From: Convolutriloba macropyga
Lineage: Eukaryota
Assembly (NCBI RefSeq): GCF_964194025.1
Contig: NC_134478.1
Coordinates: 56,358,001 to 56,422,000, forward strand
Reading direction: 5' to 3'
Length of the DNA stretch: 64,000 bases
Part shown: piece by piece, positions 41,101-62,685 of the stretch
Position numbering within the stretch: position 1 is the first letter of the stretch
Layout: each line of letters opens with the position of its first letter
Position numbers and translations under genes: made by a program
The notes under the pieces: model-generated
Told to the model about the DNA's origin: nothing
The model's input: only the letters and a program-made list of their open reading frames with translations
Databases searched by the model: none

Positions 41101-44100
41101 TGTTCCAAATGTTGTACTACAGGTGGTCTGTTGTACATTGTGCCTCTGATGGTGGCCACAATGACAGCCAAATGGGTTGGGGACAGTATATGTAAACACG
41201 GCATATATGACGAACACATCCGCCTGAATGGATACCCCTTCCTGGACAACAAACAGGAGACCCACTCCCAACAATCTCTGGCTGCCGGTGACATCATGAA
41301 ACCCAGACCCAGTGATCCACCTCTGCAGGTAAAAATCTGTTGCCTTCAAAACTGTGGACACTTTTTTATGAGTTGATGCTAATCAAACAAAGCGTGTTTT
41401 TTATCGGTTATGTTACGTGACTCTACTTGGAGTCACAGAAGTTCTGGCGTTTATCGGGACCCTTTGGAGATAGAATTTCGAAGTAACTACTGAAGTGTCA
41501 CGTAAATAATACTTAAAACACTCACGTGTACATTTTGAAATGCCGAAAGTATGCAGAGGCAGAAGTTGAAATGTCAGAAGTTCCTATATAATTAGCAGGA
41601 AGTATGACTTCCAATTTTTGACATCTTAAAACGTGTAAATTCCGTTTTTTTTAAGTAATGGTTACGTGACTCTTATTGAAGTCACTGAGAATTTCTGGCG
41701 TTTATCGAGAACCGCGAAGCCATTCGAGATATTAAGTCAGAATTTCGAAGTGATTTCTGCAGAGTCACTTAACTATGCTTAAAACACGAAACGCGCACGT
41801 TTTAAAATGACGAAAGTCAACGAATGTAAACTTCTGGCTCAGTAGCAACTTCTGGTATTTTAACTTCTGGCACTGCAGACTTTCGGCATTTTAAAATGTG
41901 CACGTGAGTGTCTTAAGCAAGGTTCGATATTCTGATTTAATGTCTCAAACGGGTACGAGGTTCTCGATAAACGGCAGAAGTTTTTAGTGACTTCAAACAG
42001 AGTCACGTAATCGTTTCTTAAAACACACAACTTGAAGTTTGAAAAGCGTCAGAAGTTCATGGAAGTAATCTTTAGCTATGTATATAGGCTCTTCTAGCAC
42101 TTTAGGTTTCGGCGTTTTAAAACGTCCTGCAACTTATGATAATTGCCAGTTCTAAAAGGTTGTTATGCTTCGAGATAAATTAAGTATTTGAAAAGGAATT
42201 ATTTCCAATTTCCCCACGCGTAACTTTGTAATGTAAGCAACTTGAATTGCTGCTGTTTCCATCCTTAAAATTTCCGTCTCCAAAAAGAGGCGAAGCACAT
42301 TAGGGTGATTTTTAAATTTAAAAAATATGGGTTACAGGTGGTTATTCCAGCTGGAGTAGAAAAGACCCGCAGAATGATCAAGGTCATGTTTTTTTGTTGT
42401 ATTGTATTTTTGTAGCTCGCCTATGTAGCAGAGGGAACATTGATGGTCGATCTAGTGGGGGAGGGGATAAGAGTATGTTCTTAGATTGAATTTGGTTCTT
42501 CGTAGACTTCTCTTGAGTTTGTTGCGTACAAAGAGATCTGGAGTAGACAACAGTTTAATTGCTCTCAAACGAAGTTCGTGACAATTATATTAGTCCTGCG
42601 GTCTTGCTTAATGCGATTTTTTTGTCTGACCCTTTTAACTTTTTTGTCCATTAAGTGGGCTCTCTTAGAGCCTTAGGCCTTACTAGTCTCTAAGTGTGCC
42701 ATTCGCCAAATCTGTTTTGAGGAAACAACTTCATGGTGTGAAGGGTGGTTCTTTATCGTAAAAGTTTATCCACTTCTCCCTCTCCTTAGTCAACACTACG
42801 CTCCCCCTAACCCCTAACACGCCCCCCCCCCCCGTCAACCACCTACGCTTGATGCAGAGGGAATCATGGAAATTGTTTTGGAGAAAAAAATTGATTTTGA
42901 AGAGTGGTTTTTAAAGTGTCACCCCCGCACTTCAAGTCGCAACCCCCCTCCCAAAAAAAGAGTCTGCACACCCTGCACATCATTCCACCTGCAACCCTGC
43001 ACGCTCGACCCGACGACGTGCTCACTACCCCCATGCTCACCCCATGACCCACCAATGAAGCTAAAGCTAGCCTCCCTAAATGGTAGCTAGATATTGACAA
43101 AACCAGCCGCTTGGCAGTGGTTTGAGAGCAATTCGCCCATTTCTCACGTTTAAGTAACAAAAATAATCTAAAGGTTCTTGAGCAAATGAACATATACGAG
43201 AATGAAGAAAAAGAATTTGCTTCGGATTGAAAAAATAGTAATAAAAAGACAGGAATTTTGAGTTTTGCAATTTGTAACTTTGTCGAAAGTCTCACAAAAC
43301 TAAATTCTCACATCTTGAATTGACCAGAAATGGCACTAAGTTTTTCGTCTGAAATATTAGACTTTTCCTACAGAGAAGCGCCTGTGCAGTTGTCTTCTAG
43401 TTTAACTTGATCTCCACTATCACCAACTCTCCCACTTGCCAAAGCGATTCGTCCAATATTCAGGGCGCAAATTTTTTTACGCACTCTCCTTTATTACAGT
43501 TCAAAGAGTTTGAATCGTATGGGGCGCTGTCTTTTTTTAAGATCTGTTCACACTTGATTTTTGACGTCAAATTGGAGTTGTGATTTTGGTCACGGCGAAA
43601 CAGGAAGTGGAGCAAAAAAGCGAGTGGTTTTGTGGCGGGATTTTTTTACTCGAATTTAAATTTAGAGTGAGAAAACGGTGTTTGAAGACATTGGCTTTCT
43701 CGATTGTGATTTTTTGTTCACATGCGGCAATTTGACTCTGATTTTTACTGTTTTTTCTATTTTGTTCATTCTTTTTTTTCTAACAGGTTTTCCAAATCAA
43801 TTCATTGTTAATAGCCACGTCCTCAATTCTAGGCGGCTATTATAGCGCTCCTATTTTTTTTACAATTCTATTTTTTTTACAATTCTAAAAAAAACGACTT
43901 CTGAGCTCACTCATGAAACTTTAAATTTTATGAACGTTTACTTATTAAAGGTCAATAGTGTGCATCTAAGTAGTGCCAAACATATGCCCTAATTCTTGAA
44001 TATTAGAGTCTTGAGTTTTTGATTTCGAATATTAATTTTGGGATCTTTTCCGTTTGTGCCCCCCCCCCCCAAATGTTGCACGTGCATCTCTGGGAGGTGC

Positions 44101-47100: not shown

Positions 47101-47894
47101 CCAGCTACTCGCCAGTCATCCGAAAGCATTTCGTTTGACGTTAGTTGCTTATGTTTTATATTTTTGATTGGCGTATTCTTTGCACCATCAGCGTATTGAT
47201 TGTTTGACGTCAGCCATAATGTCTCAAGAAAATTGAGTATGGAATGGGTTGGAATTTAATGTCTCGATGTACATTTTTGAGTAACATCGGTAGACTTTTT
47301 GAAGCCAAAATTTCCTGTCCATAATTGTTCATTGTAAATTATAGGTCATGTTATTATATTCAGTATATCGGCTGTAACGTTAGTAGAATACGTAAAAATT
47401 TGAAGCAGTTTATGTTCCAATTGACATGTTTTCAGGTGTTGACTCTCGATGACATGACCTTCGAGCAAGTTAACGCGGTAGCTGAAAATACGAAATTCAA
47501 TGGATTCCCGCTTGTCCTGGACAGAGAAACCTATCGTCTCTGTGGCTACGTACTAAGACGCGACCTCAAACTGGCTCTCAAAAATGCCCAAGCTATCAAT
47601 CCAAACGTGGTGAGCCAATCAAAGGTTTTCTTTACTTCTGAGATACCTTACGACGAGTCACAAAACGTAGGACCTGCACCCCTGAAACTCCGAAGAATTG
47701 TGGAACTGAGTCCTTTCCAGATAACAGTGCAAACGCCAATGGATACAATTTTGGATGTGTTTGTCAAATTGGGTTTGAGAACGCTTTTGGTGACAAATAA
47801 CGGAAGGCTGCTCGGGATTATTACGAAAAAGGATGTATTACGTCATATTGCCCAAATTACAAATCAAGATCCAAGTGATTTTTTGTTTCATTAA
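1823..47894 (+). CDS. CLCN3: H+/Cl- exchange transporter, ClC-3/4/5 clade; join(1823-2195,4067-4357,21521-21733,25414-25585,33996-34537,35222-35476,40477-40749,41123-41328,47436-47894), 927 aa
   Basis: All 8 introns are GT-AG with matching phases (1,1,1,2,1,1,1,0); total 2784 nt. Motifs: [21 protein letters not shown] (gating Glu), LFSLEE (proton Glu), GLFIP, MFELTGGL, two CBS domains, C-terminus DPSDFLFH. The symbol denotes the CLCN3/4/5 co-ortholog. Confidence 0.93.
2797..3857 (+). mobile_element. Helentron-type non-autonomous element (family H2, subTIR ATAGCCGC) with a nested H3 element at ~2848-3410
   Basis: 5' tttaATAGCCGC...ggctatt; 3' GCGGCTAT + stem-loop ctggca-atc-tgccag + ctatgttt. 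Nested element runs ACAATTCAAAGAATTTGAATTGT ... TTTGAATTGT-acgt-CAGGACttGTCCTG. Confidence 0.7.
4067..4357 (+). CDS. CLCN3: CLC exon 2
   Basis: taacag|GA...TTAG|gttagt; [21 protein letters not shown]...AWICVFL. Confidence 0.92.
4560..7731 (+). mobile_element. Degenerate CR1/L2-type non-LTR retrotransposon (ORF1 + APE-RT ORF2) in CLC intron 2
   Basis: ORF1-like ...IGLGRP...[10 protein letters not shown] (5051-5263). APE motifs LNCRGL, IETRL, GGACI, VYHPP, LDL, SDH (5473-6030). RT remnants YRPISNLPK (~6750), LYADDSK (~6893-6913), DLGVTIS (~7078). Ends AATAAA + (TAC)4 at 7709-7732. Many stops and frameshifts; 5' boundary approximate. Confidence 0.85.
8049..8208 (+). repeat. 5' LTR of BEL/Pao element (160 bp)
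   Basis: TGTTCCCAATG...TTCATTACA; differs from the 3' LTR by 3 substitutions and 2 indels. Confidence 0.93.
8499..8733 (+). repeat. Array of CAGACGTCACC motifs (~40-bp spacing, ~80-bp dimeric unit)
   Basis: Six exact copies near 8499, 8539, 8579, 8619, 8659, 8692, plus a degenerate one at ~8723. Confidence 0.9.
9055..11160 (+). repeat. 175-bp tandem satellite, about 12 copies, inside the retrotransposon leader
   Basis: Anchor ATTGCATCT at 9241, 9416, 9591, 9766 (period 175), continuing with increasing divergence to about 11150. Confidence 0.92.
12212..18735 (+). pseudogene. BEL/Pao gag-pol polyprotein, disrupted by frameshifts and stops
   Basis: Gag [21 protein letters not shown] and three Cys/His knuckles (CEKC..H..C, CSNC..H..C, CQTC..HH); protease [11 protein letters not shown]; [15 protein letters not shown]; RNase [23 protein letters not shown]; integrase [26 protein letters not shown]; C-terminal WPLGRV. 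Confidence 0.92.
18918..19073 (+). repeat. 3' LTR of BEL/Pao element (156 bp)
   Basis: Near-identical to 8049-8208; terminal CA mutated to TA; followed by TSD AGTAG. Confidence 0.93.
19132..20430 (+). mobile_element. Helentron-type element (family H1, subTIR ATTGCTCTC) with nested family H4 copy at ~19718-20152
   Basis: 5' tttaATTGCTCTCgaacgaagtttgatGCAAT; 3' GAGAGCAAT + ccgat-gtta-gtcgg + ttgtttt; internal C-rich tracts. Confidence 0.7.
21259..21417. mobile_element. Merlin-like MITE (159 bp), 8-bp TSD GTTTTGAA
   Basis: TIRs GGATCTATTCTGCCCCCCCC / GGGGGGGACAGAGTAGATCC; GTTTTGAA at 21251-21258 and 21418-21425. Confidence 0.8.
21521..21733 (+). CDS. CLCN3: CLC exon 3
   Basis: ttttag|TC...ATTG|gtcagt; [27 protein letters not shown]...REQCCW...WQTWSELI. 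Confidence 0.92.
21988..24080 (+). mobile_element. Helentron-type element (family H4, subTIR ACGACTCGAAG), directly followed by an H3 element
   Basis: 5' tttttACGACTCGAAGaggagt; 3' CTTCGAGTCGc + ccgg-aattctc-ccgg + ctatgttt. Confidence 0.6.
24081..24650 (+). mobile_element. Helentron-type element family H3 (~560 bp); other copies ~2848-3410, ~43497-43800, ~44407-44712, ~44768-45325, ~51795-52175
   Basis: Shared body GGGGCGCTGTC...GGTCACGCCGAAACAGGAAATGGAGCGAAAAAGCGAGTGG; palindromic 5' end; 3' CAGGACTTGTCCTG-CTATGTTT. Confidence 0.8.
25414..25585 (+). CDS. CLCN3: CLC exon 4 (absent from the ORF track)
   Basis: tttcag|CT...AAGGG|gtgagt; ...[32 protein letters not shown]. Confidence 0.95.
25648..27047 (+). 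mobile_element. Helentron-type element family H2
   Basis: 5' ttaATAGCCGCG; 3' atCGCGGCTATtttccgacaatctgccggctatgttt. Its 3' body recurs at ~28500-28950 and ~45400-45865. Confidence 0.65.
30379..33259 (+). mobile_element. Head-to-tail dimer of family H1 Helentron-type elements (~30379-31830 and ~31829-33259)
   Basis: Two similar ~1.45-kb units, each starting ttaattgct...aaacgaagtttg and ending gagagc(a/c)attcgc..cgaYgttagtcgg..tgttt. Internal degenerate repeats, plus a 12-bp repeat at 30740-30792. Confidence 0.75.
33996..34537 (+). CDS. CLCN3: CLC exon 5
   Basis: ttttag|A...ACAG|gtaagt; [11 protein letters not shown]...[12 protein letters not shown]...[20 protein letters not shown]. Confidence 0.96.
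35222..35476 (+). CDS. CLCN3: CLC exon 6
   Basis: ctgcag|GT...AAAG|gttagg; LIYRLFRDC...LCDY...[19 protein letters not shown]. Confidence 0.93.
36400..38420 (+). repeat. Old, degenerate ~340-bp tandem array (about 6 units)
   Basis: Anchors recur about every 325-370 bp: GTCGAAGCCGTTA-like (~36550, 36875, 37245, 37590, 37915, 38250); TTGAGACCTGTCATT-like (~36465, 37150, 37502, 37820, 38151); GTGATATGTGAC-like (~36623, 36967, 37321, 37663, 37992). Confidence 0.65.
40477..40749 (+). CDS. CLCN3: CLC exon 7
   Basis: gtttag|GA...ACTG|gttagt; [15 protein letters not shown]...[33 protein letters not shown]. Confidence 0.96.
41123..41328 (+). CDS. CLCN3: CLC exon 8
   Basis: ctacag|GT...CAG|gtaaaa; [10 protein letters not shown]...KWVGD...[16 protein letters not shown]. 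Confidence 0.95.
41410..42120. repeat. Foldback-type repeat made of direct and inverted ~190-bp modules; a related module lies at 39477-39690
   Basis: 41511-41700 (CTTAAAACACTCACGTG...) is inverted relative to 41730-41917 (...CACGTGAGTGTCTTAAG). Confidence 0.75.
43369..45789 (+). repeat. Recent local duplication with A-B-A-C-B structure
   Basis: A ~43369-43868 = ~44281-44778; B ~43888-44278 = ~45401-45789; the copies are nearly identical. Confidence 0.88.
44041..44148. mobile_element. Merlin-like MITE (108 bp), 8-bp TSD TAATTTTG; duplicated copy at 45554-45659
   Basis: TIR GGATCTTTTCCGTTTGTG / CACAAACGGAAAAGATCC; TSD 44033-44040 and 44149-44156. Empty sites of the host repeat are visible at ~26845 and ~28742. 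Confidence 0.85.
47436..47894 (+). CDS. CLCN3: CLC exon 9 (CBS1/CBS2, stop)
   Basis: tttcag|GTG; FNGFPLV...GYVLRRDL...[27 protein letters not shown]...TAA. Confidence 0.96.
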   Translation: MLTLDDMTFEQVNAVAENTKFNGFPLVLDRETYRLCGYVLRRDLKLALKNAQAINPNVVSQSKVFFTSEIPYDESQNVGPAPLKLRRIVELSPFQITVQTPMDTILDVFVKLGLRTLLVTNNGRLLGIITKKDVLRHIAQITNQDPSDFLFH

Positions 47895-50800: not shown

Positions 50801-52422
50801 TTCAAAAACAGGCAGTTAACGTTGTAATTTTGCTGTTTGAATGTTTTTTTTTGTTATCGAGTGTTAATTTTTTTTGTTATTGTTAACTTATTAACAATTT
50901 TTAGCATCCGAATGCAAATGGCAGCAGTTAACTGTTAAAAATGATGCAAATGTGTCAAAATTGTGTTTTTTCTACAGTTTTTAAAAAATCATTTTAGGGT
51001 TCTATGAAGAGCATTATTTAGAGCCTCGCTGTTAAATAATTGCAGCCCCCGATTGAACAGTCTGTAATCGTCCGCATCTCTCAACCGCCTACAGTGATTT
51101 GTTATCTTTTTTCTGAGCTTTTAATCAAGAAAACATGTGTCAATAAAATTCAATGTTTTTATTTAAACTGCATAACGTTTTAAAGTGGGCACCAAAGTTG
51201 CTAGTGCTGCTTGCACTAAATTAAGTTAATTTTTTTGAATGTGGAATTGTTTTAAATTTTTTGAATTGTTTTAAATATGCCTCAAATAACGTTTCAGTTT
51301 CCTCCAAAAATTTAATTTAACTTTGTAGGTTAAGAAACTAAAAGATACGCAAAATTTAAAGCAAATGTTAAAAATGATTTTGCGGTCAAAATTTTAGTTG
51401 ATTAAGATGTCTCCCCCCAAAAGAAATTTTGACAAACAGGGTTATTGGTAGTGCTTTATAAGGAAAATGTTGAAACAGGCTCATGATAACAGCTTGCCTA
51501 TTTTTTACTACAGAATATTTGAATAAGGTGGTTCTGTCACCACTTGGGCCATTTTGCTGCTTGTACTGATTTTAAATGAAACTCAAGATTTACCTATTGG
51601 TTTACATTGAAAAATTTGTAATTAAATTATTTCTTGATTAAGCTGCTACAAATATTATACCAAATCTCTAAAAATTGCTTTTGCTATCTACATAAAAGAA
51701 TTGCTCTATTATCATTTTCGCCATTTTGTCTTGAAATCTGCCTTTACGGGCGGACACGTACAACCGATGTTTAATTTTTACAATTCAAAGAATTTTTACA
51801 ATTCAAAGAATTTGAATTGTATTGGGGCGCTGTCTTTTTTTGAAGATCTGTTCACACATTTTCATGATTTTTGAAGTCAATTTGGAGTAATGATTTTGGT
51901 CACGCCGAAACAGGAAGTGGAGCGAAAAAGCGAGTGGTTTTGCGGCGTGAATTTTTTTGCTCTGAATTTAAAGTAGAGTGAGAAAACGGTGTTTGAACAA
52001 AAATTCGCTTTCTCGCTAGTGGTTTTTTTGTTCACATGCGGCAATTTCACTTTGATTTTACTGTTTTTTTTCGATTTTTTAAATCGGATTTTTTTTTCTA
52101 AATGGTTTTCGCATTCCATTCATAGCCCGTTCTAGGTCTAGTTTTCTGTTTAGTCAATGAAAATTCTTGTCCTGCAAAACATAGCAGGACAAGTAGATAA
52201 TAAAATAATCTACTTGTCCTGCTATTTTTTTTAACTTCGTCAAAAAGAAGTTAAATTTGAAAGTTAGGTTTGAAAATAAAACCCCGTTTTAAAGTGAACC
52301 GTCTTTGTTGAAGTGATCTCGCTTTGTATTTATTTGGGATTATTTTGATTTCAGATATAAAATGGTGATTTAATCTTTGTTTTTGTGCCGAATGTTTTTG
52401 TGAATTCTTAACTAATGTTAAG

Positions 52423-53226
52423 ATGGCATCAGCATTATCTTCTTTTCGCAAAGCTGTCGCATTCATATCTGGAGGTGCCACTGGACTTGGACGTGCCACA
52501 GCTTCAGCCATTGTCCAGAACGGAGGAAAAGTTGCAATTCTAGATACAGATTTCAGCGCTGGCTCGAAACTGTCCGCAGAATTGGGTGAAAATTGTAAAT
52601 TCACTGAAGGTTCGGTGACGGATCGTGCAGTTATAAAACGAGCACTTCAATCTGGATCACAATCATTTGGCCAGAATTATAATTTGTGTGTAAATTGTGC
52701 TGCGAAAAGTGATTTTATCAAGATTTTCAACAAGAAGCACGGCAAAGCTACCAGTTTTGATGTTTTTTGGAAGCCATTTCAAGTTAATACTATTGGAACA
52801 TTTAATGTTATGACCCTTTTTGTGTCCGAAGTCCAAAGTTATCGTGAAGCTACGGAAGAAAATGGCGATGAAAATGACGCAGTTATAATTAATAAAACGT
52901 TTTTAATAGAAGGTACTGAGTTGGTTGCAGCTTATGCGTCGTCTAAAGGAGCGGTGAAAAGTATGACTTTGCCTGCTTCCAGAGAACTGTCAACATTAGG
53001 CATCCGAGTTTGTTCGATATCAACTGGATTTTTCAACACCGAGAAGTTGAAAGAAATTTGGTCGCCCAATACGAAAGTTAATTATATCACAGGAAGAATA
53101 CACCCGAAATTCAGGATGCCAGAGCCGGAGGAATTCGCACATGCAGTTGCGACCGTGTTTCAAAACAAACTTTTGAATGGTTGTGATATTAAGCTTGATA
53201 ATGCTAATTTCTTAGTGTATGCTTAG
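52423..53226 (+). CDS. HSD17B10-like: Divergent HSD17B10/scully-like short-chain dehydrogenase (267 aa, intronless CDS, catalytic Ser apparently lost)
   Basis: SGGATGLG Rossmann motif, VNCA, VNTIGTFNV, AAYASSKG (YxxxK), MTLPASREL..GIRV, LNGCDIKLD; collinear with HSD17B10 over the whole length. Confidence 0.88.
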   Translation: MASALSSFRKAVAFISGGATGLGRATASAIVQNGGKVAILDTDFSAGSKLSAELGENCKFTEGSVTDRAVIKRALQSGSQSFGQNYNLCVNCAAKSDFIKIFNKKHGKATSFDVFWKPFQVNTIGTFNVMTLFVSEVQSYREATEENGDENDAVIINKTFLIEGTELVAAYASSKGAVKSMTLPASRELSTLGIRVCSISTGFFNTEKLKEIWSPNTKVNYITGRIHPKFRMPEPEEFAHAVATVFQNKLLNGCDIKLDNANFLVYA

Positions 53227-54535
53227 ATTAAACTTCTGATGAACAAAAATTTACCACGTTGAAATGGAAATATGCAAGAATAATTGTTTGCTGCCGATTT
53301 TTAAACCATTAGAAAGAGTTGTGTATTCGTTCTCTGTATATTTTACCTCTAAGCGCCTGAAATATCGAGCGTTTCTCTAACATGAATATTTGTTTTGGTT
53401 AGTTTTCGGCTCTAAAAGTTTTTTTTATTGGACTGAGACGGTGTCTTATAACATTCCTTAGACATCTCTTTAAATAATTTTGGTTAATCAGAAAATAAAT
53501 TCTAATCATTTCAAATCATGACGAAATCAGTTCATCACCCACCTCGGATGCATTTTGAACGTGCAGCCCACCCAATGGGGTTTTCAATGCCAACAAATAT
53601 CTTTAAGATGCAGTATTCAATACCAGTGCAATTGTGCCCATTTGAGTTGTCCCCAGTCCAATTGAGACGACGACCCCTTCTTTTTTATTCCACGTTCCGT
53701 TGCTGTTTAACTATTCTCTACCGAAGTTTGAAGCAATTCCTGTTGTAGCCATGTGTGCTTTTCTATGCAGATGTTTTGTTTGACTGTAATGATTTTGGAT
53801 AGGATTTTTTGTCCTTGACCTCTGTCGTTTTGCGTGATTCGAATATTTCTCCGAATATGCCTGCCTCTTGTATGTCAATCAAGATTTCTCTTAAATGGCA
53901 AGTTTTCTGTTCTCGTCATCTTGCTTTTCATTTGAAAACCTTCGTATTAAGCACGCTGTTGCCAAAAAATGTACAATTTAAATGCCAATAGTTTTCGTTT
54001 TCTAATAATTTCTCCTTTCGCTTGTAACGTTCAATTGGTCTGCTGGTAAAAAAGCAATAGTTTGTCAGTCATTTCTTTGAACTATATTTCGGGACTTGTC
54101 TTGCAATGTTTTTTTTAAAAACTTTCAAATGTTTGTTTACTTTCAGGTGACTTGAAATCACTTTGAGTGTATAAGCTAAGGAATGGTATTTATATTCTTC
54201 GTATTCTTGCATTATCTTAATTGAAAAACTTTTGTCAACATATTTTAGTGTTTATTTAAACTTTTCTGTCGGATTTTTTGCCTGTATGGCTGATTGGCGA
54301 ATTTTTTGAATTGAAAGAAATGCGAGCTGTCATTTCAGAAGGGCTCGCATTCATCGGGCTTCCAGTTATAGGTTATTTCGTCGATCAATTCATCGTTTAG
54401 AATTAGAAATTTACACATATAGAAACACTATGAGGCAATGCGTATGTATCCATCCATGTTCAAAGAAAGATAGTTCGTTCAGGGATAGAATCTGGATAAT
54501 CATGATGTTAATGTGAGTTTTTTTCAGTTTCTACT

Positions 54536-56662
54536 ATGTCACTGTGTGGCTTGCACGAATGGATTCAGGAAAACTTCCCAAATATAATCCAAAAAGTCTC
54601 TCTAGACATAATACCCGCCCACTCATTCGACTATGTCCTGATAGATATGCAAAATGTCATCCTAAACTCCTCCCGAGTCTCGGCCAACAACGAGTTCACA
54701 AATCTGTTCTTAACAAACTCTGACGTCATAGATTACTGTCTTCATTATGTCGAGACTATTTTCACTCTTTTCAGACCCAAAAGGCGTCTGTACATCGCAA
54801 TTCCAGGTGTGGAACCCTTAGCATCGGCTGTCAGAACTCGCAAAAATGCGTACGTTAATGCTCAAAGGTTGCAGCAGCTCAAAAAGAAACTTTATTCAGC
54901 TAGATTAGACACTAATTTACCGCACGAAGTTTTTGACACAAACTGCTTGCTCCCTGGATCGCAATTTATGCTGGAATTGCAGAAAAATGTCGAATATTGG
55001 CTTGCAGATAAGCTAAACTGCGATGCTGATTGGCAAAACTTAGAGGTCATTTTATCAGCGCATGACGTGCCTGGCGAATCAAAACAGAAAATTGCCTCGT
55101 ATCTTAGACAGGAGGTCAAAATTATCGATAATAGTTCGACTTTTGCCGTTTTTTCAGAAGACGCTGAAATGGTTCTTTTAACAAGCTGTCTGTCTCTGAT
55201 CGATATTAATATTCTCTTCACCGATCGCAATAACTCCGAAATTCACCCTGAGAGAAAAACTTATCAAACATTGTCAATTGATTCGTTCAAAGGATGTTTA
55301 GCCGGTTATTTTCAGAAGGATTTCGAGCCAGGAAAGTGTAATGTTGCCCTAGATATTGGAAGGTTATGCGCAGATTTCGCATTGTTGTGCCACATTTCAG
55401 GAAGTTATTATTTTCCTCAGCTTCCGTTACTGTTTTCACGAAATTGTCTCGACCCGGTTTTAGACTGTTACAAGTCTTTTGTGCAATATATGAAGGATTA
55501 TATTATGACATTTGACAAGAAAGTAAACTTCACCGAGCTATCTGAATTCTTCGATAAGTTTTCCCTGCTTGAGGGGAAAGTTTTCGAGAAAACTATTTTT
55601 CCTAAAATGCTGAAATACAGGTCGGAGCTGATTTCCCAGAAAGGGTACGGTTTTAACGACGCTCAATTACGGGCTAGAAAGGATATTTACGGATTTGTTT
55701 TCGACACCAGGCCTTTTCCAGAAGACAGTGATGTTGCTTCCGAGTTTAGTTGTTACAGAATGGGGTTTTACAAGTATAAATTGAAGTTTGAAGAAGATAA
55801 TGATGTTAGAAAATCATGCATGGGCTTGTTAAAAACCTTCTGTTGGGTTATGGATGCCACCTTAAATAATAATGTCCCGTCGTGGGAATGGGCATACCCG
55901 TTTGACTACAGCCCTTTAATTTCGGATATTCTTGGCGTCGCCAGTTGCTCCTTCCGGTTCGCCCCGGACGCTCCAATGCCAAATTTTGCTTACTTAATGT
56001 TCGTACTTCCCCCGGAAAGCCAGCAATTGCTTCCAGAAATTCTCCGACCAGAAATTTCAAAAGAGGAAAAGGTCGAAATTGACTGCGTCCACTTTGAAGA
56101 CCAGAAAAAATTCACAATTTTGATTCCGCATCGAGATTTCAAAATCGTTAAAAATGTGCTTGACAACAAAATTGCCGAAGTTTCTGAAATCGAAAAGTTA
56201 CGCAACCATCAGGGGTCTAGAAGGGTTTTAAAAAGCGAGGAATTTGAGCAACCTGTTTTTAAGTCAGAGCTGAATAGAATTGCGTTTCCAGATATCAAAC
56301 CCTGTTTTGTATCTTGCAATACTCGTCCTAGTGAAATGGGCGCACATGTTGAAATCGACTCTCAACACATTTCTCAAACGCTTAAAAATGCAGCAGCTCC
56401 GATAACTGATCAACCGTTGCCTGTTAAATCACAAGGCAATGTGGACCAACTTTTACCCGGACAGGTACGACCGAATTTAACTCAACCAGAGCGAACAGTT
56501 CCGCCTCTTCCACCGCACCAAATGTTTCCACATAGAATTCCGCCTGAGTTCCAACAAAGAGCTCCACCTCCACAAAGATTGTCAAATGAAGCGCTTCTGC
56601 CTATACATGGAATGAATAGAAATATGGCACACGGGTTTCGAGACGGATTTGGAAACCGATGA
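54536..56662 (+). CDS. XRN1-like: XRN1-like 5'-3' exoribonuclease homolog, 708 aa, intronless CDS, degenerate active site, Pro/Gln-rich tail
   Basis: FDYVLIDMQ, FRPKRRLYIA, FDTNCLLPGSQFM, DVPGE, SWEWAYPFDYSPLISD, LMFVLPPES..LLP, ILIP..D match XRN conserved regions 1 and 2. Splice acceptor ttttttcag (AG 54526-54527) sits 8 nt before the ATG. Confidence 0.9.
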   Translation: MSLCGLHEWIQENFPNIIQKVSLDIIPAHSFDYVLIDMQNVILNSSRVSANNEFTNLFLTNSDVIDYCLHYVETIFTLFRPKRRLYIAIPGVEPLASAVRTRKNAYVNAQRLQQLKKKLYSARLDTNLPHEVFDTNCLLPGSQFMLELQKNVEYWLADKLNCDADWQNLEVILSAHDVPGESKQKIASYLRQEVKIIDNSSTFAVFSEDAEMVLLTSCLSLIDINILFTDRNNSEIHPERKTYQTLSIDSFKGCLAGYFQKDFEPGKCNVALDIGRLCADFALLCHISGSYYFPQLPLLFSRNCLDPVLDCYKSFVQYMKDYIMTFDKKVNFTELSEFFDKFSLLEGKVFEKTIFPKMLKYRSELISQKGYGFNDAQLRARKDIYGFVFDTRPFPEDSDVASEFSCYRMGFYKYKLKFEEDNDVRKSCMGLLKTFCWVMDATLNNNVPSWEWAYPFDYSPLISDILGVASCSFRFAPDAPMPNFAYLMFVLPPESQQLLPEILRPEISKEEKVEIDCVHFEDQKKFTILIPHRDFKIVKNVLDNKIAEVSEIEKLRNHQGSRRVLKSEEFEQPVFKSELNRIAFPDIKPCFVSCNTRPSEMGAHVEIDSQHISQTLKNAAAPITDQPLPVKSQGNVDQLLPGQVRPNLTQPERTVPPLPPHQMFPHRIPPEFQQRAPPPQRLSNEALLPIHGMNRNMAHGFRDGFGNR

Positions 56663-57106
56663 TTATAGAGCACCCTCCTTATCCTTATAAAGAAAACAAA
56701 TTGTTTTGGATGTTATGTTTGTTGTTGATATTTATCAGTTTAACTATTATGGAAATAGAAGTGCAAAATACGTTACGTGCTTGTAATTTATGTTCCATGT
56801 ATAAGACTTGTTCAAACAAAATTAAAATTATGACGCCGCAGAAGAATTTCTAAATTGAAATTGGCTTTTTCCCTCGATTTTTTTTTCTATTTTTGTTGCT
56901 TCGAATTTTGGAATGTAAGCTAATTTCTGAAAAAGTGAATACTGGATTTAGCAGATTTTCCGATTCTAAATTTAGTAGTTAAAGTCCCAGTCAAAATTGG
57001 TCGTGACTATTATTTAGGGATAACTATGCGGCGTTACGATGTTTTCACTGCCATGAGTTCAATAAGAGGTGTTTTTCTTTGGTTATCAAATATTGACAAT
57101 TGTGGA

Positions 57107-60100
57107 CTATTCGTCTTCCGTTTGGAAAGTTGGGTTCTGGTATGGTGAAAAGAGTATAAAACCCACTAGCAACCCAACGACAAAAATTGTAGCCAATAAA
57201 TATAGAAGAATTCTAGATCCATTCCAGTAATTGATGACGTCCACTTCCAAAAAGTCACATGGATCCACAACTAAGACGTCGTCAAGTTGACAGTAGGAAT
57301 TCTGATAGGCCGTCATGCACTTGATGTACGCTTTCTGTCTCCGAAAAGCAATCGCTGAAAATAACGATTTTCAAGCTGAGCAGTCCAGCCCTTGAGTGCC
57401 GTTTTGATATAGTTAATAGCTCTCTAAGACTATGGTTTTATTGTGACTTGTAAGAGAGCCGAAGTTAAAAAGAGTCGATTGAAAGAGCCGAAAATTTATT
57501 AAAATTATAAGATTCGATAAATTAAGATGAATTTTTACAGATGAATTAAGATAAATTGCCTTCTGAAATGAGACCACCAAATTCTCAACCAATCATAACC
57601 GAGTATTTAGGAAATGAAATTTTAAATGTTCTAGTAAAATAAACTGAAAGTGAATTATAATTATCTTGAATTTGGTGACGTCTTAACAAATAGACGTACC
57701 ACAATGTAGAATTTTCAACGAATTGGTTGAACAAATTTAAGACACTGTACCTTTATGCGTTCAATTAGCCTAAGTTGGCCATTGCCTAATTCTAGATTAT
57801 TTTACCCATACCTCAGCGGCCCGTGCAACTTTATATGAATCTATCACAACCAAACGTGAGACCAGTTTCCTACAAAAAGTATTATTTTTCTCTTTCGGGT
57901 TATCGCCTTTCTGAGTAAATTTACGTTAACATTCATATCCTATTTTTAAAAATGGAGAATTTGTTGAGCAATCAGCCAATCAGAAAACAATATTCCCATT
58001 TTTTCAATAGTGAATGACCAGCCATAAAATTTCTATATTTTGGTACGTCTGCCATTTTCGCTAGCGGCCTCGATTTTATTGTGGGCCATTTCCACTAGCG
58101 GCCTCGAATTTATCGTGGGCCTCAGCAGCGGTGACGTACAACAATGCCGACGTATAAGAGTGTCGAAAATTTATTCAATTTTTCAATCGATAAGTTTCTA
58201 AACCAATCAGATCACTTCAACTGTAATGAGCACAAAAATGCTGAACCAATTACAATGAAATGGTGAGATTTTTTATTTAGTAGGACAAGATAATTGGAGC
58301 GGGATAAATTTAGAGCAAACAGTAATAATTGAGGACCATGGCCATGCCTCAGAGGCCAGTGGTACTTGATATGAATCTATCGCAACCGAACTACTGATCG
58401 GCGTGCCCTGTTTGCTTTGAAAACAAATTCCGCAAGCATTTAATTGATAATTAATTAGTATTGGTGGTTTCAGCACTTATAACATCAGTTCGCGTTTTGG
58501 CACTCTTAAACGTCGGCATAGTATTGCGTCGGCATAGTTGTACGTAACCCTGAGCAACTTATGGGACTTGATATGAAACTATCACAACCGAACATGAGGA
58601 CAATTAACCCAATTAAGTACTTTTCTTGTCTTTAATCACCCTAAATTGTTAGTTGATTACCAAGAAAAGTACTTAATTGGGTTAATTGGCCTCATGTTCG
58701 GTTGTTATAGTTTCATATCAAGTCCCATAAGTCGCTCAGGGTTACGTACAACTATGCCGACGCAATACTATGCCGACGTTTAAGAGTGCCGAAACGCGAA
58801 CTGATTTTATAAGTGCCGAAACTACCAATACTAATTAATTATCAATTAAATGCTTGCAGAATTTGTTTTGTGTTCGGCTCATTTTCAAGTCAGTTTTCGG
58901 CGCTTTCTAACATCGGCTCTTTTACGCGTTATCGGTGTACTTATCTCTTCAAAACTAATATTATGAAGCCAAAAGCAAGAAAATAGTCACCATATAGCCA
59001 AACAAAAATCTCAGTTGGAGCCTGAAATCCAAAATTAAGAGCAAATGCAAAATTCACGCAAATAAGAGTTGGTGTTTGGGTTTCCATTAGCAATACCTCT
59101 TAAGTTCATTTAAAAACTACGATATGATTATATACGTGATTCAATGTAAGTTCCGTCTGTATGAAAAATTTTAAATGATTGTTTTTTTGAAGTTCTGCTT
59201 GCTAATTTGGGACGAGTTCACATTGAAATTTTTCTACATCGTCTATTTCAATTATAGTTTGCATATTGATCACGGGCAATTCTTAACCTCAATGGCCGAC
59301 CGGTGATGGTTGTTATTAGTTAGATTTACTCTAGCCGAGTTTGTTGTTCCATAGAAATAACTTTGGTAGAAATGAAATGCAATCTGTAGGTTCAACTTCC
59401 AATGCGGTCTATTTCAATCAGCGTTTCGGGAATTGGTTCGAATTTCTTACCAGTTGCAGTGCAAGAACTTAAATCAGTTGCATCTTGACCACAGTTGATG
59501 ACGTAACAGTTCGCAGTCTCCAGTTCAAAGTATGAAGTGTTTTGAGCGTACCCGAACCATGTTAGGGTTCTGTTTTCGTTGGGGTAAAGCTGTGGGCACA
59601 GTAAATTTGCTGCAAATCTAAAAAGCAAAAAAAACTTGATGGCATTTTATGAAGTACATTGCATTTGAATGTGAATTTCGACATTATGGACTGAAAAATT
59701 ATGACTTAATGTTTAAAATTATACAAAAACCGGAAAGTCGTAAATCAGCTTGCCAATCGCTACCGAAGGAATTGTGTACTAAGAGAGTTTTGAACAGACG
59801 CTAAGAGCTGATCGCGTATAAAAAAAGTTTAATTCAATTTTCTGGTCTTCGGTAGTTGCTAAAGACCATGTAGCAGTCCCAGCTTGCCTTTTAATTGTTT
59901 TGCCTTTTAATTGTTTTTAGAAATTAATTTCGAATGATGTTTTCATTTCTCTTTGATTTTTTGACAAGGTGCTTTTCTGAAACGTGATATTCTTTCGCAT
60001 ATGTTTAGTGGCAATCAATTAAATTTTGCTTCTGGAAATGCTCACATGCAGCTGATTGTCTGCTTTAGTTTGAGATATATGGAAATTGATTTAAAAAATT

Positions 60101-62685
60101 CGAATTGAGCTAGCCTTAAACAATTTTTTACGGCGAAATTGTATTCTAACTTATTTTCGAGTTTCTCGATTTTGAGCTTGAATGCAAAGAAAATACGGGC
60201 TTTTGTTATCATATTGAAAATTTAACATAAGTTTGAAATGTTAAGTTTTTATACCATGCAGACAAATGTTTTGCTTGACTGAAATATCACTGCTATTTCT
60301 GGTACGAAATTGTTCCCTCTGAATTTTTGTTGACTTTTGAAAAGATATCCTATGATACTTATAAACACGTGCTTAATCCATGAGCTCTTTCAAAACTATC
60401 AAGACCTGAAGACGTAAAATCTGTCAAACTTATCTGAAAGTCGTATTTACAGATATTTTGAGAATATTCATTTCCTCACTACCACAATTGCGCATTTTCA
60501 TGTTAAACATTATAGAATACAGTTATCGAGTTTTAAAGTTTTTGTGACCATCGAATGATGTTCTCTGTTTTTGTTATTTTTGAGCATTTTGTTCTCATTG
60601 TTTTATTATGCTGAAGCAATTTAACGCTGTAAATTATGCTATCATTCATTATTAATTTGACTTTGCTAAATTTTGGGTGATTTTGTTTTAAATAACGCTT
60701 TTTTCATAGACTTTTCTTCAAATCCGTTATTTTTTTAGCGAAAACTTGATACTGCTCTAGACTAACGCCTAAAAACTCGGTCAAATAATATTCATAAAGT
60801 ACAGCTACCGCTAGTTCAAATTTCAACTATCTAGCAAAGCGGTATGGATGGGACCTTCTGCCATGTTTTTGGTAATTTAAAGGTAATTTTTGTTCCTTTT
60901 GGCGTCACTTCTGATATTTTGGCAAAGTATGTTAATTTTATCAATAGTTTTTGTTATAAAATTAGGTTTTCAAGATCTCTCCTTTTTCGATTTCTTGTTT
61001 TGAATGAGAAGTGAAATTGGAGCAGCAATTTTATTCACGCCGAAAAAGTAGAGAGCGAAAAACTGACTTGTTTTTTAACCGTGACATTTTAAACTTTTTC
61101 CAGGGTTAAAAGTTAAGAAATTTTTGTTAAACATTTTTTCACGGAAATTTAAACCGTTCTGCCGTTCTCTGGATAATTCTCCTGACGGATGTTACTGTTG
61201 GTTATAAACGTCCATGGGCAGCTAATGATTTTTCTGACTTTGACACTGGTTTCATAAAATTATCGAATTTTTGGTTTTTGCTCGTATGTTGTGCACTTTT
61301 TGTTCGCTTAGCCTGAAGTGCCTTTAATGGCAGGTCACATTGACGTTTTAATGGGCTCAATATAAAATTTTCATGATTTTTAGACCATGAATTTCATGAA
61401 TTTGACAATGATCTTTTTTATTAAAAAATGGTGAAATAAATGGTAAAATATTTTCCTCCTTTTTTGTGTCTCCTTATTTTTCTGTCTTCAATTTTTTGGC
61501 AGGTCTTTTTGAAGTGGTAATGAGAACTAATATGTTTTAATTAATGGCTTACTATTTTAATGACTTTAGCTTTGTGTTTTTACAAAATGTTTTTTAATTT
61601 TTGAGGTTTGGAATTGTGGCTTTATATAATTATTGGCGAAGTTTTGAATTTTTTCTGTACTTTTTTCTTTCTGTCTGGTCTCCTATTCCCAGACAGGTCA
61701 AAAACGGTTTTTGTTTGAAATTAATTTGAAAATAGCGAAGCAATAAAACTTTTTGTTTTTATTGTTTCGCAAAATTGTTTATTTGATATAAATAGGTTTG
61801 TTTTCTACTTCAGAAATTGTATTAGCTGAATTGTAATTTTCAACAAAATGCTGTGCCCATTGTTTTTTTGTCCATTGTCGTGAAATAAAAAACCCTTGAG
61901 TTATCAATCTCACTAGAGTACGCGTCTGTCTGTATTTGAGAATCCATCTATGTTAAGATTTTAAAGCATAAATAGCTCTGTATTATTTTGAACCTCTCCC
62001 ATCTCTACTACATTTGGTAGACAATTAAGCCAACAATTGTCTTGAGCTTCTTGGGTTGGAAGAGGCTCCTTGTTTGACTTTGTTCTCATAGTATTGCCGT
62101 TCCTGATTGTTATTTTATTTCAGCTAAGTAACCGTGATGCGAAGTTCTTTTTCTGTAGGTTCCAATTTTGCCAATTTAGTCTCGACAGGAATTTGAGAAT
62201 GAATTCATAATTTTCAAAATCATAGATGTTTTTGTTTGATCGAATCAAAAGTGAGTTCACCGTGTCTGATTATAATAAAAAATATATCCCCACTGAAATA
62301 AACCCAATGTTATCATTGAACTTCGGTCGCAATAATTTGTTTGGTTGTTTCATAACAGTTTCATGTCAAGTCCCACGGCTTGCTATGGCATGAAAAAATG
62401 TGCAGCTCCTTAGCAGTCGAGTTGGGGTTTGTTTCCGGGGGGGGGGGGGGGGGGGTTCCGTAGGTTTTTTCAAAACCGAAGAGTTCACCTGTTGATTTCA
62501 CAGACTGGTTCCTGGTCACTTGATCCGGTCTGAGTGGCTGCCAGGTAGCCATGGTCATCAGTGAAGGGTCCTACCAGACTCAGCTCAATACCACTCACTG
62601 TTGCCGGATTTGAAGTTGTTTCTGTCGACTTAAATTGAACTACGCATACGAGTAATACATTTAATAAAAATGTTGTTAGTTTCAT
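57107..62685 (-). CDS. Small type I membrane protein with divergent SRCR-like domain; complement(join(57107-57354,59451-59617,62489-62685)), 203 aa
   Basis: Signal peptide MKLTTFLLNVLLVCVVQF. GT-AG introns with matching phases (2,1); 612 nt in frame. Cys pattern LSLVG..G.L...PVC....AANLLCPQL...INC......LSSC...AYIKC. TM helix ILLYLLATIFVVGLLVGFILF and a short acidic tail. Confidence 0.75.
58420..58869. repeat. Long near-perfect inverted repeat (arms 58420-58628 and 58661-58869, 32-bp spacer) in an intron of the minus-strand gene
   Basis: Arms are reverse complements over ~209 bp with about ten mismatches; partial relatives at ~57812, ~58120 and ~58345. Confidence 0.92.

Follow-up and report, generated by a model that had tools for sequence, protein, structure and literature searches.

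An expressed, lineage-restricted XRN-family paralogue of acoels that has probably lost catalysis

Introduction

Few RNA-decay enzymes are as conserved as XRN1 and XRN2, whose 12 key active-site residues are all intact in 141 of 172 sampled homologues. In the acoel Convolutriloba macropyga we found a stop-free, intronless ORF of 708 codons which codes for an XRN-like protein with most of these residues replaced. We can then ask: Is this a decaying copy, an enzyme with changed chemistry, or a selected protein that works without cutting RNA? We consider it likely that the gene is an expressed, lineage-restricted acoel XRN-family paralogue, most probably derived from XRN1, whose product is catalytically inactive and acts non-catalytically. 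The window analyzed here is a stretch of 64,000 nt (NC_134478.1, 56,358,001 to 56,422,000), and all coordinates are positions within it (Table 1).

Table 1. Features of the XRN-like gene in the window.
Feature	Position	Strand	Evidence
AG trans-splice acceptor	54526..54527	+	X1 transcript contig with leader; pyrimidine tract then AG in genome
Complete CDS, probable XRN-fold pseudonuclease, 708 aa + stop	54536..56662	+	ORF, Pfam, alignments, X1 contigs
XRN_N, aa 1-227, contains degenerate active-site motifs	54536..55216	+	Pfam PF03159, E 4.2e-40
Codons 90-105: P90 for D86; S97/T101/N104/A105 for 5'-phosphate pocket	54803..54850	+	Alignments
Codons 181-211: E181, D209 retained; K183 for E179; E211 for D207	55076..55168	+	Alignments
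Codon 291: Tyr for seventh catalytic Asp	55406..55408	+	Alignments
Residues 361-440, peak conservation within pseudonuclease clade	55616..55855	+	Sliding conservation comparison
Best XRN_M (Xrn1 helical domain) match, aa 407-505	55754..56050	+	Pfam PF17846, E 4.6e-24
Codon 524: Lys for base-stacking Trp540	56105..56107	+	Alignment
Pro/Gln-rich, predicted disordered C-terminal tail, aa 602-708	56339..56659	+	pLDDT, composition, pN
3' UTR, end uncertain	56663..57200	+	Poly(A)-signal hexamers at 56821 and 57195

Fold and Domain Composition

Both Pfam domains of the XRN nuclease were recognized above their curated cut-offs, XRN_N with 138.1 bits (cut-off 22.9) and XRN_M with 85.6 bits (cut-off 23.8). 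Among solved structures, Drosophila Xrn1 is the closest relative (2y35, E 1.2e-47), and it is colinear with the acoel protein over query residues 8-502 and chain residues 8-509. The AF2 model has a mean pLDDT of 81.8, with the surroundings of the cleft predicted with high confidence. Its superposition on human XRN1 (9e70) gave a TMt of 0.89 at an rmsd of 3.2 Å, and all 27 top matches of the structure search were XRN1 or XRN2. Profile alignment and superposition, two of the checks proposed in the initial annotation of this locus, agree on the XRN fold.

No Pfam match was found C-terminal of XRN_M in the 708-aa protein. The tail has pLDDT below 50, is predicted to be disordered and contains 16% Pro and 10% Gln. 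A tblastn search of the window with XRN1 residues 641-1400 revealed no remnants of domains D1-D4. Hidden downstream exons for these domains are not present in the window, and the transcript contig passes through the stop codon. The initial annotation had described the C-terminal domains of XRN1 as replaced by a Pro/Gln-rich tail. Their absence and the tail itself are real, but "replaced" overstates the case, because a disordered tail merely follows the nuclease fold. A comparison of the fold with canonical XRN1 by net charge and pI was uninformative.

Active-Site Residues

Residues were mapped from alignments to 2y35 and 3pie and from a 34-sequence alignment; 31 canonical XRNs served for comparison. 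The seven acidic ligands D35, D86, E177, E179, D205, D207, and D292 correspond to D, P, E, K, D, E, and Y in the acoel protein. Thus D37, E181, and D209 (window-protein numbering) retain D35, E177, and D205, and E211 is a conservative change of D207, while D86, E179 (E178 in yeast numbering), and D292 are lost to P90, K183, and Y291. The 5'-phosphate pocket K93/Q97/R100/R101, whose residues were defined in PMC8850482, has become S97/T101/N104/A105. The base-stacking H41 and W540 are represented by L43 and K524, the N-terminal MGVPKFF lid motif is lost, and the SPIxDFYP segment of XRN1 is deleted.

Every motif string quoted in the initial annotation is present in the ORF, and its reading of them (three of seven metal-ligand acids lost and one conservatively changed, stacking His and Trp lost, 5'-phosphate pocket wholly replaced) was borne out by the alignments. 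Realignment, which had been named as a possible refutation, did not restore the acidic residues: phmmer against three solved Xrn1 chains and the 34-row and 173-row MAFFT alignments agree on the substitutions. No compensating conserved acid was found near the lost positions in the orthologue alignments.

Among the 172 homologues checked, the acoel clade alone departs from the canonical 12-residue signature, at 9 of 12 positions. The pattern of loss is common to the orthologues, with the exact residue varying at positions 43, 90, and 291 (Y, S, S, and A at the last), and none of the orthologues deviates at D37, E181, D209, or E211.

Transcription and Trans-Splicing

In one contig from run X1, position 54526 is preceded by 22 leader letters that do not match the genomic sequence there. 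This spliced leader (SL), joined at the acceptor, leaves an 8-nt 5' UTR upstream of the ATG and is not found in the genomic DNA at the 5' end of the gene. It is identical to the published SL of S. roscoffensis, and the C. macropyga genome has about 1,277 SL gene copies. Two stretches of the genome, 54526-55185 and 55200-57355, are matched colinearly by X1 contigs, and the second of these matches crosses the stop codon. X1 depth is about 150-750 over two genes, both with the spliced leader, versus 0-4 in intergenic DNA; the X1 record carries no RNA label, and its RNA nature is deduced from this exon-only coverage and from the leader. The orthologue transcript of a third species also begins with the SL. 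Absence of transcription, which would have spoken against a functional gene, is contradicted by SL-bearing transcript contigs in two species.

The 3' UTR reaches into the 3' end of a convergent gene on the minus strand. The transcript contig beyond 57355 was considered as a 3' exon of the XRN-like gene and rejected, since it is joined to 59452 across a CT..AC intron on the minus strand and belongs to the convergent gene.

Orthologues, Synteny, and Selection

Orthologues were found in four acoel species, C. macropyga included. The S. roscoffensis protein is 63% identical, and comparison with this species showed conserved CBS-SDR-XRN-orf125 synteny; the orthologues of the two further species are 46% identical. 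A gene next to the XRN-like one codes for an HSD17B10-like protein. Frames of about 700 aa are open over their full length in three species. In the fourth species four exons were detectable, all open, and residues 1-79 were not found. Introns are absent from the gene in two species, while the orthologue of the fourth has canonical GT-AG introns. A recent retrogene is unlikely because of these introns, because intron presence in the neighboring CBS gene also differs among the species, and because the genome has no SL at the 5' end of the gene.

How strongly is the protein constrained? Between orthologues synonymous sites are saturated (pS 0.80-0.91) versus pN of 0.23-0.36, and because pS exceeds 0.75 in every pair no numerical dN/dS can be given. 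In every folded region pN is well below pS, with the lowest regional value, 0.15, at residues 401-510. The tail is fast-evolving and the least conserved part (pN 0.48-0.63). Between two alleles of C. macropyga there are 16 synonymous changes in about 437 sites and 10 nonsynonymous changes in about 1624 sites. Per site, nonsynonymous changes are thus about one sixth as frequent as synonymous ones, and five of the 10 fall in the tail. The gene is under purifying selection and expressed, so it is not a pseudogene. The initial annotation, which had proposed a selected gene and a comparison with orthologues, is upheld by frames open across four species, low pN against saturated pS, the roughly sixfold allelic deficit, and the trans-spliced mRNA.

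The distribution of constraint has also changed. Residues 361-440 are the most conserved in the clade, and in canonical XRN1 the first half of this segment is a variable linker with gaps. The conservation profile correlates with that of canonical XRN1 at only 0.14, and active-site windows are less conserved than the remainder of the protein. By these alignments, the focus of constraint has shifted away from the active-site motifs and now lies at about residues 361-440.

Origin of the Gene

The C. macropyga genome has a canonical XRN2 on C13, with every catalytic motif retained, and a canonical XRN1 on C7, with N-terminal and CR2 motifs. The exons for XRN1 residues ~188-468 were found nowhere in the assembly, and a 200-N gap lies exactly within the missing interval; this XRN1 is only partly visible because of the assembly gap. 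The expectation that both canonical enzymes exist elsewhere was thus confirmed for XRN2 with all motifs and for XRN1 in part.

From which of them did the paralogue arise? It scores 166-155 bits against Xrn1 structures versus 125-104 bits against XRN2/Rat1. Query residue 8 is aligned with residue 8 of the Xrn1 chain, while query residues 60-65 are aligned with residues 72-85 of the XRN2 chain, and the N-terminal insert typical of XRN2 is absent. In four tree runs and three AU tests the signal was divided among XRN1, XRN2, and viral ancestry: the best tree without viral rows placed the acoel clade on the XRN1 side (SH-aLRT 99), grouping with XRN2 was not rejected (p-AU 0.60), a free quick tree with viral rows joined the acoel and viral clades (SH-aLRT 92), and a tree constrained to unite the acoel clade with cellular XRN1 had a lnL 12.8 above that of the free tree (p-AU 0.745). 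The acoel stem branch is very long, about 3-7 substitutions per site. The earlier label "XRN1-like" therefore stands on similarity scores and N-terminal colinearity, while the trees also accommodate an affinity to XRN2 or to giant viruses. Judged from the sequences, descent from XRN1 is probable.

Capture of the gene from a giant virus (Nucleocytoviricota) instead of duplication of a host XRN1 would concern its origin only and is compatible with a pseudoenzyme, but we disfavor it as unlikely. Besides the quick tree and the intronless state in two species, points in its favor are that giant-virus XRN clusters are nearest by language-model features (0.97) and that viral XRNs, at 510-600 aa, likewise consist of XRN_N and XRN_M without D1-D4. 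A Tetraselmis virus 1 XRN homologue is also among the viral structural matches, and the symbiont of S. roscoffensis belongs to Tetraselmis. However, all three orthologues tested by phmmer score 150-182 bits against cellular XRNs and at most 119 against viral ones; all viral matches, headed by one of 119 bits (cellular XRN1 176), stand at rank 178 or below among 206 rows. The XRN1-constrained tree is better than the free one, and attraction between the acoel and viral clades is expected because both are long branches. The GT-AG introns of the fourth species, the conserved host synteny, and the lack of viral neighbors at the locus also speak against capture.

Possible Function

Yeast Xrn1 is inactivated by E178Q alone, which abolishes both 5'-P decay and deNADding, a second Xrn1 activity that uses the same site and needs H41 (PMC8850482). 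The acoel protein is homologous to an active family and is missing individually essential residues, which strongly suggests a pseudonuclease without catalysis. From the loss of D86, E179, and D292, the 5'-phosphate pocket, both stacking residues, and the lid motif we infer that it has no processive 5'-monophosphate-dependent exoribonuclease activity.

Counting against inactivity, the four retained acids could still bind one metal. The protein might then be a nuclease or phosphodiesterase with altered mechanism or substrate, for example a PIN-like endonuclease that works with one metal, or an enzyme for ends other than 5'-phosphate. The invariance of these acids in all orthologues, the confidently predicted cleft, and the precedent of deNADding at the same site are in its favor. 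We nevertheless regard such an enzyme as improbable: D86 and E179, each invariant in 141 of 172 homologues, are lost, the latter position bears a conserved Lys, one substitution there suffices to abolish both activities of yeast Xrn1 and the His needed for deNADding is gone, the former active-site positions 43, 90, and 291 are free to vary among orthologues, and active-site windows are conserved less than the rest.

In the preferred reading, a non-catalytic paralogue, the complete nuclease-domain fold (about 600 aa) has been kept, with a disordered Pro/Gln-rich tail where XRN1 has D1-D4. Conserved Lys183 probably neutralizes the acidic cluster D37/E181/D209/E211 instead of Mg2+, and purifying selection has shifted away from the former active site toward what may be a new surface at about residues 361-440. 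The XRN fold would be a putative binding module for RNA or for mRNA-decay or translation factors, and the tail a putative interaction or condensation region. The canonical RNA-contacting residues are among those lost, which counts against an RNA-binding role.

There is a slim chance that the cleft was re-tooled and not merely disabled, as a reader or protector of another RNA 5' end such as the SL mRNA cap or a non-monophosphate end. The change from a bulky basic pocket to small polar S/T/N/A, the Lys in the metal site, and the newly constrained residues 361-440 would fit this. If true, it would be the first XRN-derived 5'-end-binding protein.

The initial annotation had named a decoy function, germline, small-RNA, or transposon control, or membership of RNA granules, as possible roles. 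These are doubtful: the points that agree with them, a disordered Pro/Gln-rich tail and a S. roscoffensis genome reported to be about 61% repeats, are generic, and within the protein conservation is lowest in this tail.

A duplicate that drifts neutrally toward a pseudogene, its frame open by chance, is hardly credible and already contradicted: a pN of 0.23 (0-0.06 for the housekeeping neighbor CBS) and the long stem branch would suit it, but not frames still open in four species despite saturated synonymous sites, pN far below pS in every folded region, the sixfold allelic deficit, and an mRNA trans-spliced in two species.

Significance

Full-text searches of a limited collection of papers found no description of an XRN-family pseudoenzyme, in agreement with the initial annotation, which knew of none in animals. 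A selected, naturally dead XRN fold would imply that this fold has a use beyond catalysis. Such a protein would be a natural separation-of-function variant, informative on what XRN domains bind when cutting is lost, and would set a 5'-3' case beside the RNase II pseudonucleases of fungi. The immediate impact is narrowed by its occurrence in a few acoels and by a function that is still putative.

Comparison with Known Systems

The closest known system is XRN1/Pacman (2y35, 3pie, 9e70). Both Pfam domains and the fold (TM 0.89 to the catalytic domain of human XRN1) are shared with the acoel protein, which aligns colinearly to residues 8-509 of Drosophila Xrn1 without the XRN2-type insert and reaches its highest similarity scores here. 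In contrast to XRN1, the acoel protein has no counterpart of the three catalytic acids, the 5'-phosphate pocket, H41, W540, the MGVPKFF lid, SPIxDFYP, domains D1-D4 (PAZ/Tudor, chromo-like, winged-helix, and SH3-like), or the long C-terminal region. Its linker is newly conserved in the acoel clade, and identity is 22-31%.

With XRN2/Rat1 the acoel protein shares the nuclease-domain fold (TM 0.64-0.77) and the lack of D1-D4. However, similarity is lower (125 versus 166 bits for Xrn1), the N-terminal insert and zinc knuckle are absent, and the XRN2 of the same genome retains all catalytic motifs.

The short XRNs of giant viruses have the same minimal architecture of XRN_N and XRN_M (about 510-600 aa) and are also fast-evolving. 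They differ in that P0103, the one viral-clade member checked, keeps the canonical catalytic signature, and the N-terminal MG start is kept in 20 of 20 sampled viral ORFs. The acoel protein is less similar to viral than to cellular XRNs.

The fungal Ssd1/Sts5 proteins (Dis3L2/RNase II) likewise keep an exoribonuclease fold without catalytic residues and are still under selection (PMC8097288, PMC8934651). Their fold is unrelated, their polarity is 3'-5', and they are fungal and experimentally characterized, while the acoel protein is known from sequence and models. Ssd1 became an RNA-binding protein through a new surface (PMC8097288, PMC8934651).

Domain content, fold and active site

The XRN-like gene encodes an XRN fold without the XRN active site, and it is both selected and transcribed. 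In the window protein Pfam matched XRN_N at residues 1-227 (E 4.2e-40) together with XRN_M (E 4.6e-24), and no other Pfam domain. The best solved relative by phmmer is Drosophila Xrn1 (2y35, E 1.2e-47), with residues 8-502 colinear with 8-509. The Xrn1 chains of yeast, K. lactis and human gave E values of about 1e-44 to 1e-45, and XRN2/Rat1 chains scored ~40 bits below the Xrn1 chains. The AlphaFold2 model, built from a 34-row alignment, is confident from residue 1 to about 600 (mean pLDDT 81.8, pTM 0.80) and predicts disorder for residues 602-708. Its top Foldseek match is the human XRN1 catalytic domain (9e70, TMt 0.89, rmsd 3.2 A), and matches 2-27 are exclusively XRN1 or XRN2 entries. Profile alignment and model superposition, two checks proposed in the initial annotation, place the protein in the XRN fold family; it qualifies neither as an active XRN nor as a protein of XRN1 architecture.

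The motif and residue losses listed in that annotation were borne out in every detail. The mapping is identical in three independent alignments (phmmer to 2y35 and 3pie, a 34-row MAFFT and a 173-row MAFFT), and realignment did not restore the acids. The stretch directly preceding W540, conserved across canonical XRNs, is deleted. In the 173-row alignment the full canonical signature is present in 141 of 172 homologues, and the acoel clade (the window protein and its orthologues) alone departs from it, at 9 of the 12 positions. The 5'-phosphate pocket and H41 have been defined for Xrn1, which E178Q on its own makes inactive in both 5'-P decay and deNADding (PMC8850482). At this position (yeast numbering) the window protein has Lys. 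The agreement of the alignments and this Lys confirm the residue losses, and on such grounds a catalytically dead protein, as first proposed, is strongly supported.

P0154, a 1,224-aa XRN homologue from the representative library, is changed at two key positions, H41>Q and E179>K, and keeps the remaining ten; it may be another partly degenerate XRN.

Positions of features in the window, of related loci in genome assembly G000, and of key residues (Xrn1 numbering) in the window protein
Feature	Position	Strand	Remark
CBS-domain gene, two parts	41149-41331 and 47430-47891	+	intron of about 6 kb between
SDR gene, HSD17B10/MRPP2 family	52423-53226	+	E 2e-42 to 1e3w
AG trans-splice acceptor, XRN-like gene	54526-27	+	leader junction in run X1, 8 nt upstream of ATG
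XRN-like gene	54536-56662	+	single uninterrupted 708-codon ORF
Convergent gene	57107-57354, 59452-59619, 62488-62622	-	orthologue of 125-aa ORF adjoining the S. roscoffensis gene
Spliced leader (SL) repeat arrays	G000:C9 about 23.14-23.74 Mb		leader then GT
Canonical XRN1	G000:C7 about 16.11-16.162 Mb	-	multi-exon
XRN2 copies	G000:C14 about 89-151 kb; G000:C13 29.79-29.87 Mb		near-identical exon matches
D35, metal ligand	D37		kept
H41, base stacking	L43
D86, metal ligand	P90
K93, Q97, R100, R101, 5'-phosphate pocket	S97, T101, N104, A105
E177, metal ligand	E181		kept
E179, metal ligand	K183
D205, metal ligand	D209		kept
D207, metal ligand	E211
D292, metal ligand	Y291
W540, base stacking	K524

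Canonical enzymes in the same genome

The expectation of canonical enzymes elsewhere held fully for XRN2 and partly for XRN1. A multi-exon XRN2 on contig C13 is intact in D35, H41, D86, the pocket, the E177/E179 motif, D205/D207 and the GNDF motif; its near-duplicate on C14 is probably an uncollapsed haplotig. XRN1 on C7 is intact in the N-terminal motifs, the W540 motif and the downstream domain exons. No part of the assembly yielded its exons for residues about 188-468 (PGEGEHK, DAD and GNDF motifs), and a 200-N assembly gap falls within this interval.

Orthologues and shifted constraint

A 99% identical allele is present in another assembly of this species (the second assembly). Among named proteins the closest is an uncharacterised one of S. 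roscoffensis, where the orthologue has 702 aa and 63% identity; a transcript contig of a third acoel species gave a 701-aa orthologue (46% identity), and a fourth species has an intron-containing orthologue about 75-80% identical to that of the third. The D86, E179 and D207 substitutions are common to all orthologues, as are those in the pocket wherever that exon is visible, and the ex-catalytic positions 43, 90 and 291 vary freely.

Between species pS is saturated (0.80-0.91), and pN is 0.23 for the window gene versus S. roscoffensis and 0.36 versus the third species. Residues 401-510 have the lowest pN (0.15-0.27) and the tail has the highest (0.48-0.63). Between the two alleles there are 16 synonymous differences over about 437 sites and 10 nonsynonymous ones over about 1624, a per-site nonsynonymous/synonymous ratio of about 0.17, with half of the nonsynonymous changes in the tail. 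These values support a living gene under selection, as had been claimed.

Where does the constraint lie? In canonical XRN1 the active-site motifs fall in the best-conserved 20-residue windows (1-20, 81-100 and 181-220); these windows are only average in the acoel clade, where conservation peaks at 61-80, 281-300, 321-340 and 381-440. Residues 361-400, gapped or variable in canonical XRN1, are also well conserved in the clade. The two profiles correlate weakly (r = 0.14), and this shift has the appearance of fold neofunctionalisation rather than retained catalysis.

The NCBI model of the S. roscoffensis gene (LOC134840274, 519 aa) drops 183 codons (about 187-369) from a continuous 702-codon ORF (contig L017:10001-12109) through an in-frame GTGAGC...AAG pair. 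In the window species the GT is missing from this position, and the excision is a prediction error or else a species-specific exitron. The fourth-species gene (contig L029:2157-11644) has at least 4 exons over 9.5 kb, with canonical GT-AG boundaries in at least two of three introns; a search of the available 2 kb of upstream sequence did not reveal its first exon (residues 1-79).

Transcription and locus neighbourhood

Public run X1 covers the HSD17B10-like SDR gene and the XRN-like gene only, with almost nothing in between; its record has no RNA label, and its RNA nature is deduced from this gene-only coverage and the leader patterns. Both 5' ends share one non-genomic leader, ending in ...GTGATAAACTTATTAAATAG, joined at an AG acceptor (52353-54 for SDR). 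The genome contains 1,277 copies of the leader followed by GT, mainly in arrays on C9 with repeats spaced about 1-2 kb. The third-species transcript starts with the leader end 8 nt ahead of its ATG. The leader matches the published SL of S. roscoffensis (PMC9911081) exactly, despite saturated synonymous divergence between the two species. Leader-bearing transcripts in two species argue against an untranscribed locus. In the 1.3-kb spacer (53282-54525) X1 contigs have a very low depth of 2-4, compatible with a putative outron or a shared, operon-like primary transcript.

The order CBS-domain gene, SDR, XRN-like gene and convergent small gene is syntenic with S. roscoffensis. Together with the nearest named protein and the identical leader, this relates the two acoels, and saturation of synonymous sites even in the 91-100% identical CBS gene indicates that they are deeply diverged. 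The CBS gene is one ORF in S. roscoffensis (L017:3258-3896), indicating intron gain or loss between them. SDR, with pN equal to that of the XRN-like gene (0.23), has a 2-residue gap at the catalytic Ser position and retains Tyr and Lys; two candidate pseudoenzymes from RNA-processing families would then adjoin, a curious pairing.

An intron of the convergent gene spans 57355-59450 (read as CT..AC along the + strand). The gene overlaps or adjoins the XRN-like 3' UTR with its 3' end, and the assembler merged both transcripts into one contig. In the second assembly (L045:2439-5121) an insert of about 3 kb separates SDR from the XRN-like gene, and the ORFs of this insert include a reverse-transcriptase domain (RVT_1). 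Its absence from the window indicates a polymorphic retroelement insertion. High-copy repeats flank the two-gene block at 52100-52296 and 57419-58000, with DNA-run word depth of thousands to hundreds of thousands and many small rearrangement joints.

Origin

The stem branch of the acoel clade is about 3-7 substitutions per site long. The best tree without viral sequences places the clade on the XRN1 side (SH-aLRT 99), and XRN1 ancestry seems rather likely; the AU test did not reject a tree that groups the clade with XRN2 (p-AU 0.60). Capture from a giant virus was suggested by a protein-language-model search, by the short XRN_N plus XRN_M architecture that giant-virus XRNs share with the window protein, and by a free quick tree joining them to the clade (SH-aLRT 92). 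However, for all three orthologues phmmer scores cellular XRNs at 150-182 bits and viral ones at 119 bits at most, and a tree constrained to join the clade with cellular XRN1 lies 12.8 log-likelihood units above the free tree. We would read the viral grouping as long-branch attraction and consider capture improbable. A recent retrogene is argued against by the fourth-species introns and the CBS-gene intron differences.

Hundreds of IMG/VR Nucleocytoviricota contigs (L051-L130) encode short XRN homologues with XRN_N and XRN_M only; the 20 giant-virus ORFs extracted have 510-600 aa. The viral structure library includes an XRN homologue of Tetraselmis virus 1; the algal symbionts of S. roscoffensis belong to the genus Tetraselmis.

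Possible function and comparison with known systems

With such an active site, 5'-P-dependent processive decay would not be possible. The invariant Lys183 probably stands in for the metal and neutralises the four acids that remain, and this would account for their retention. A binding role, with RNA or protein as the ligand, is probable; it would use the fold and the newly constrained surface at residues 361-440, and the fast-evolving Pro/Gln tail is a proposed interaction region. The germline, small-RNA and granule roles of the initial annotation are hypotheses.

Full-text literature searches returned no description of an XRN-family pseudoenzyme. The closest concept is that of the fungal pseudonucleases Ssd1/Sts5, which belong to the RNase II family (PMC8097288, PMC8934651).
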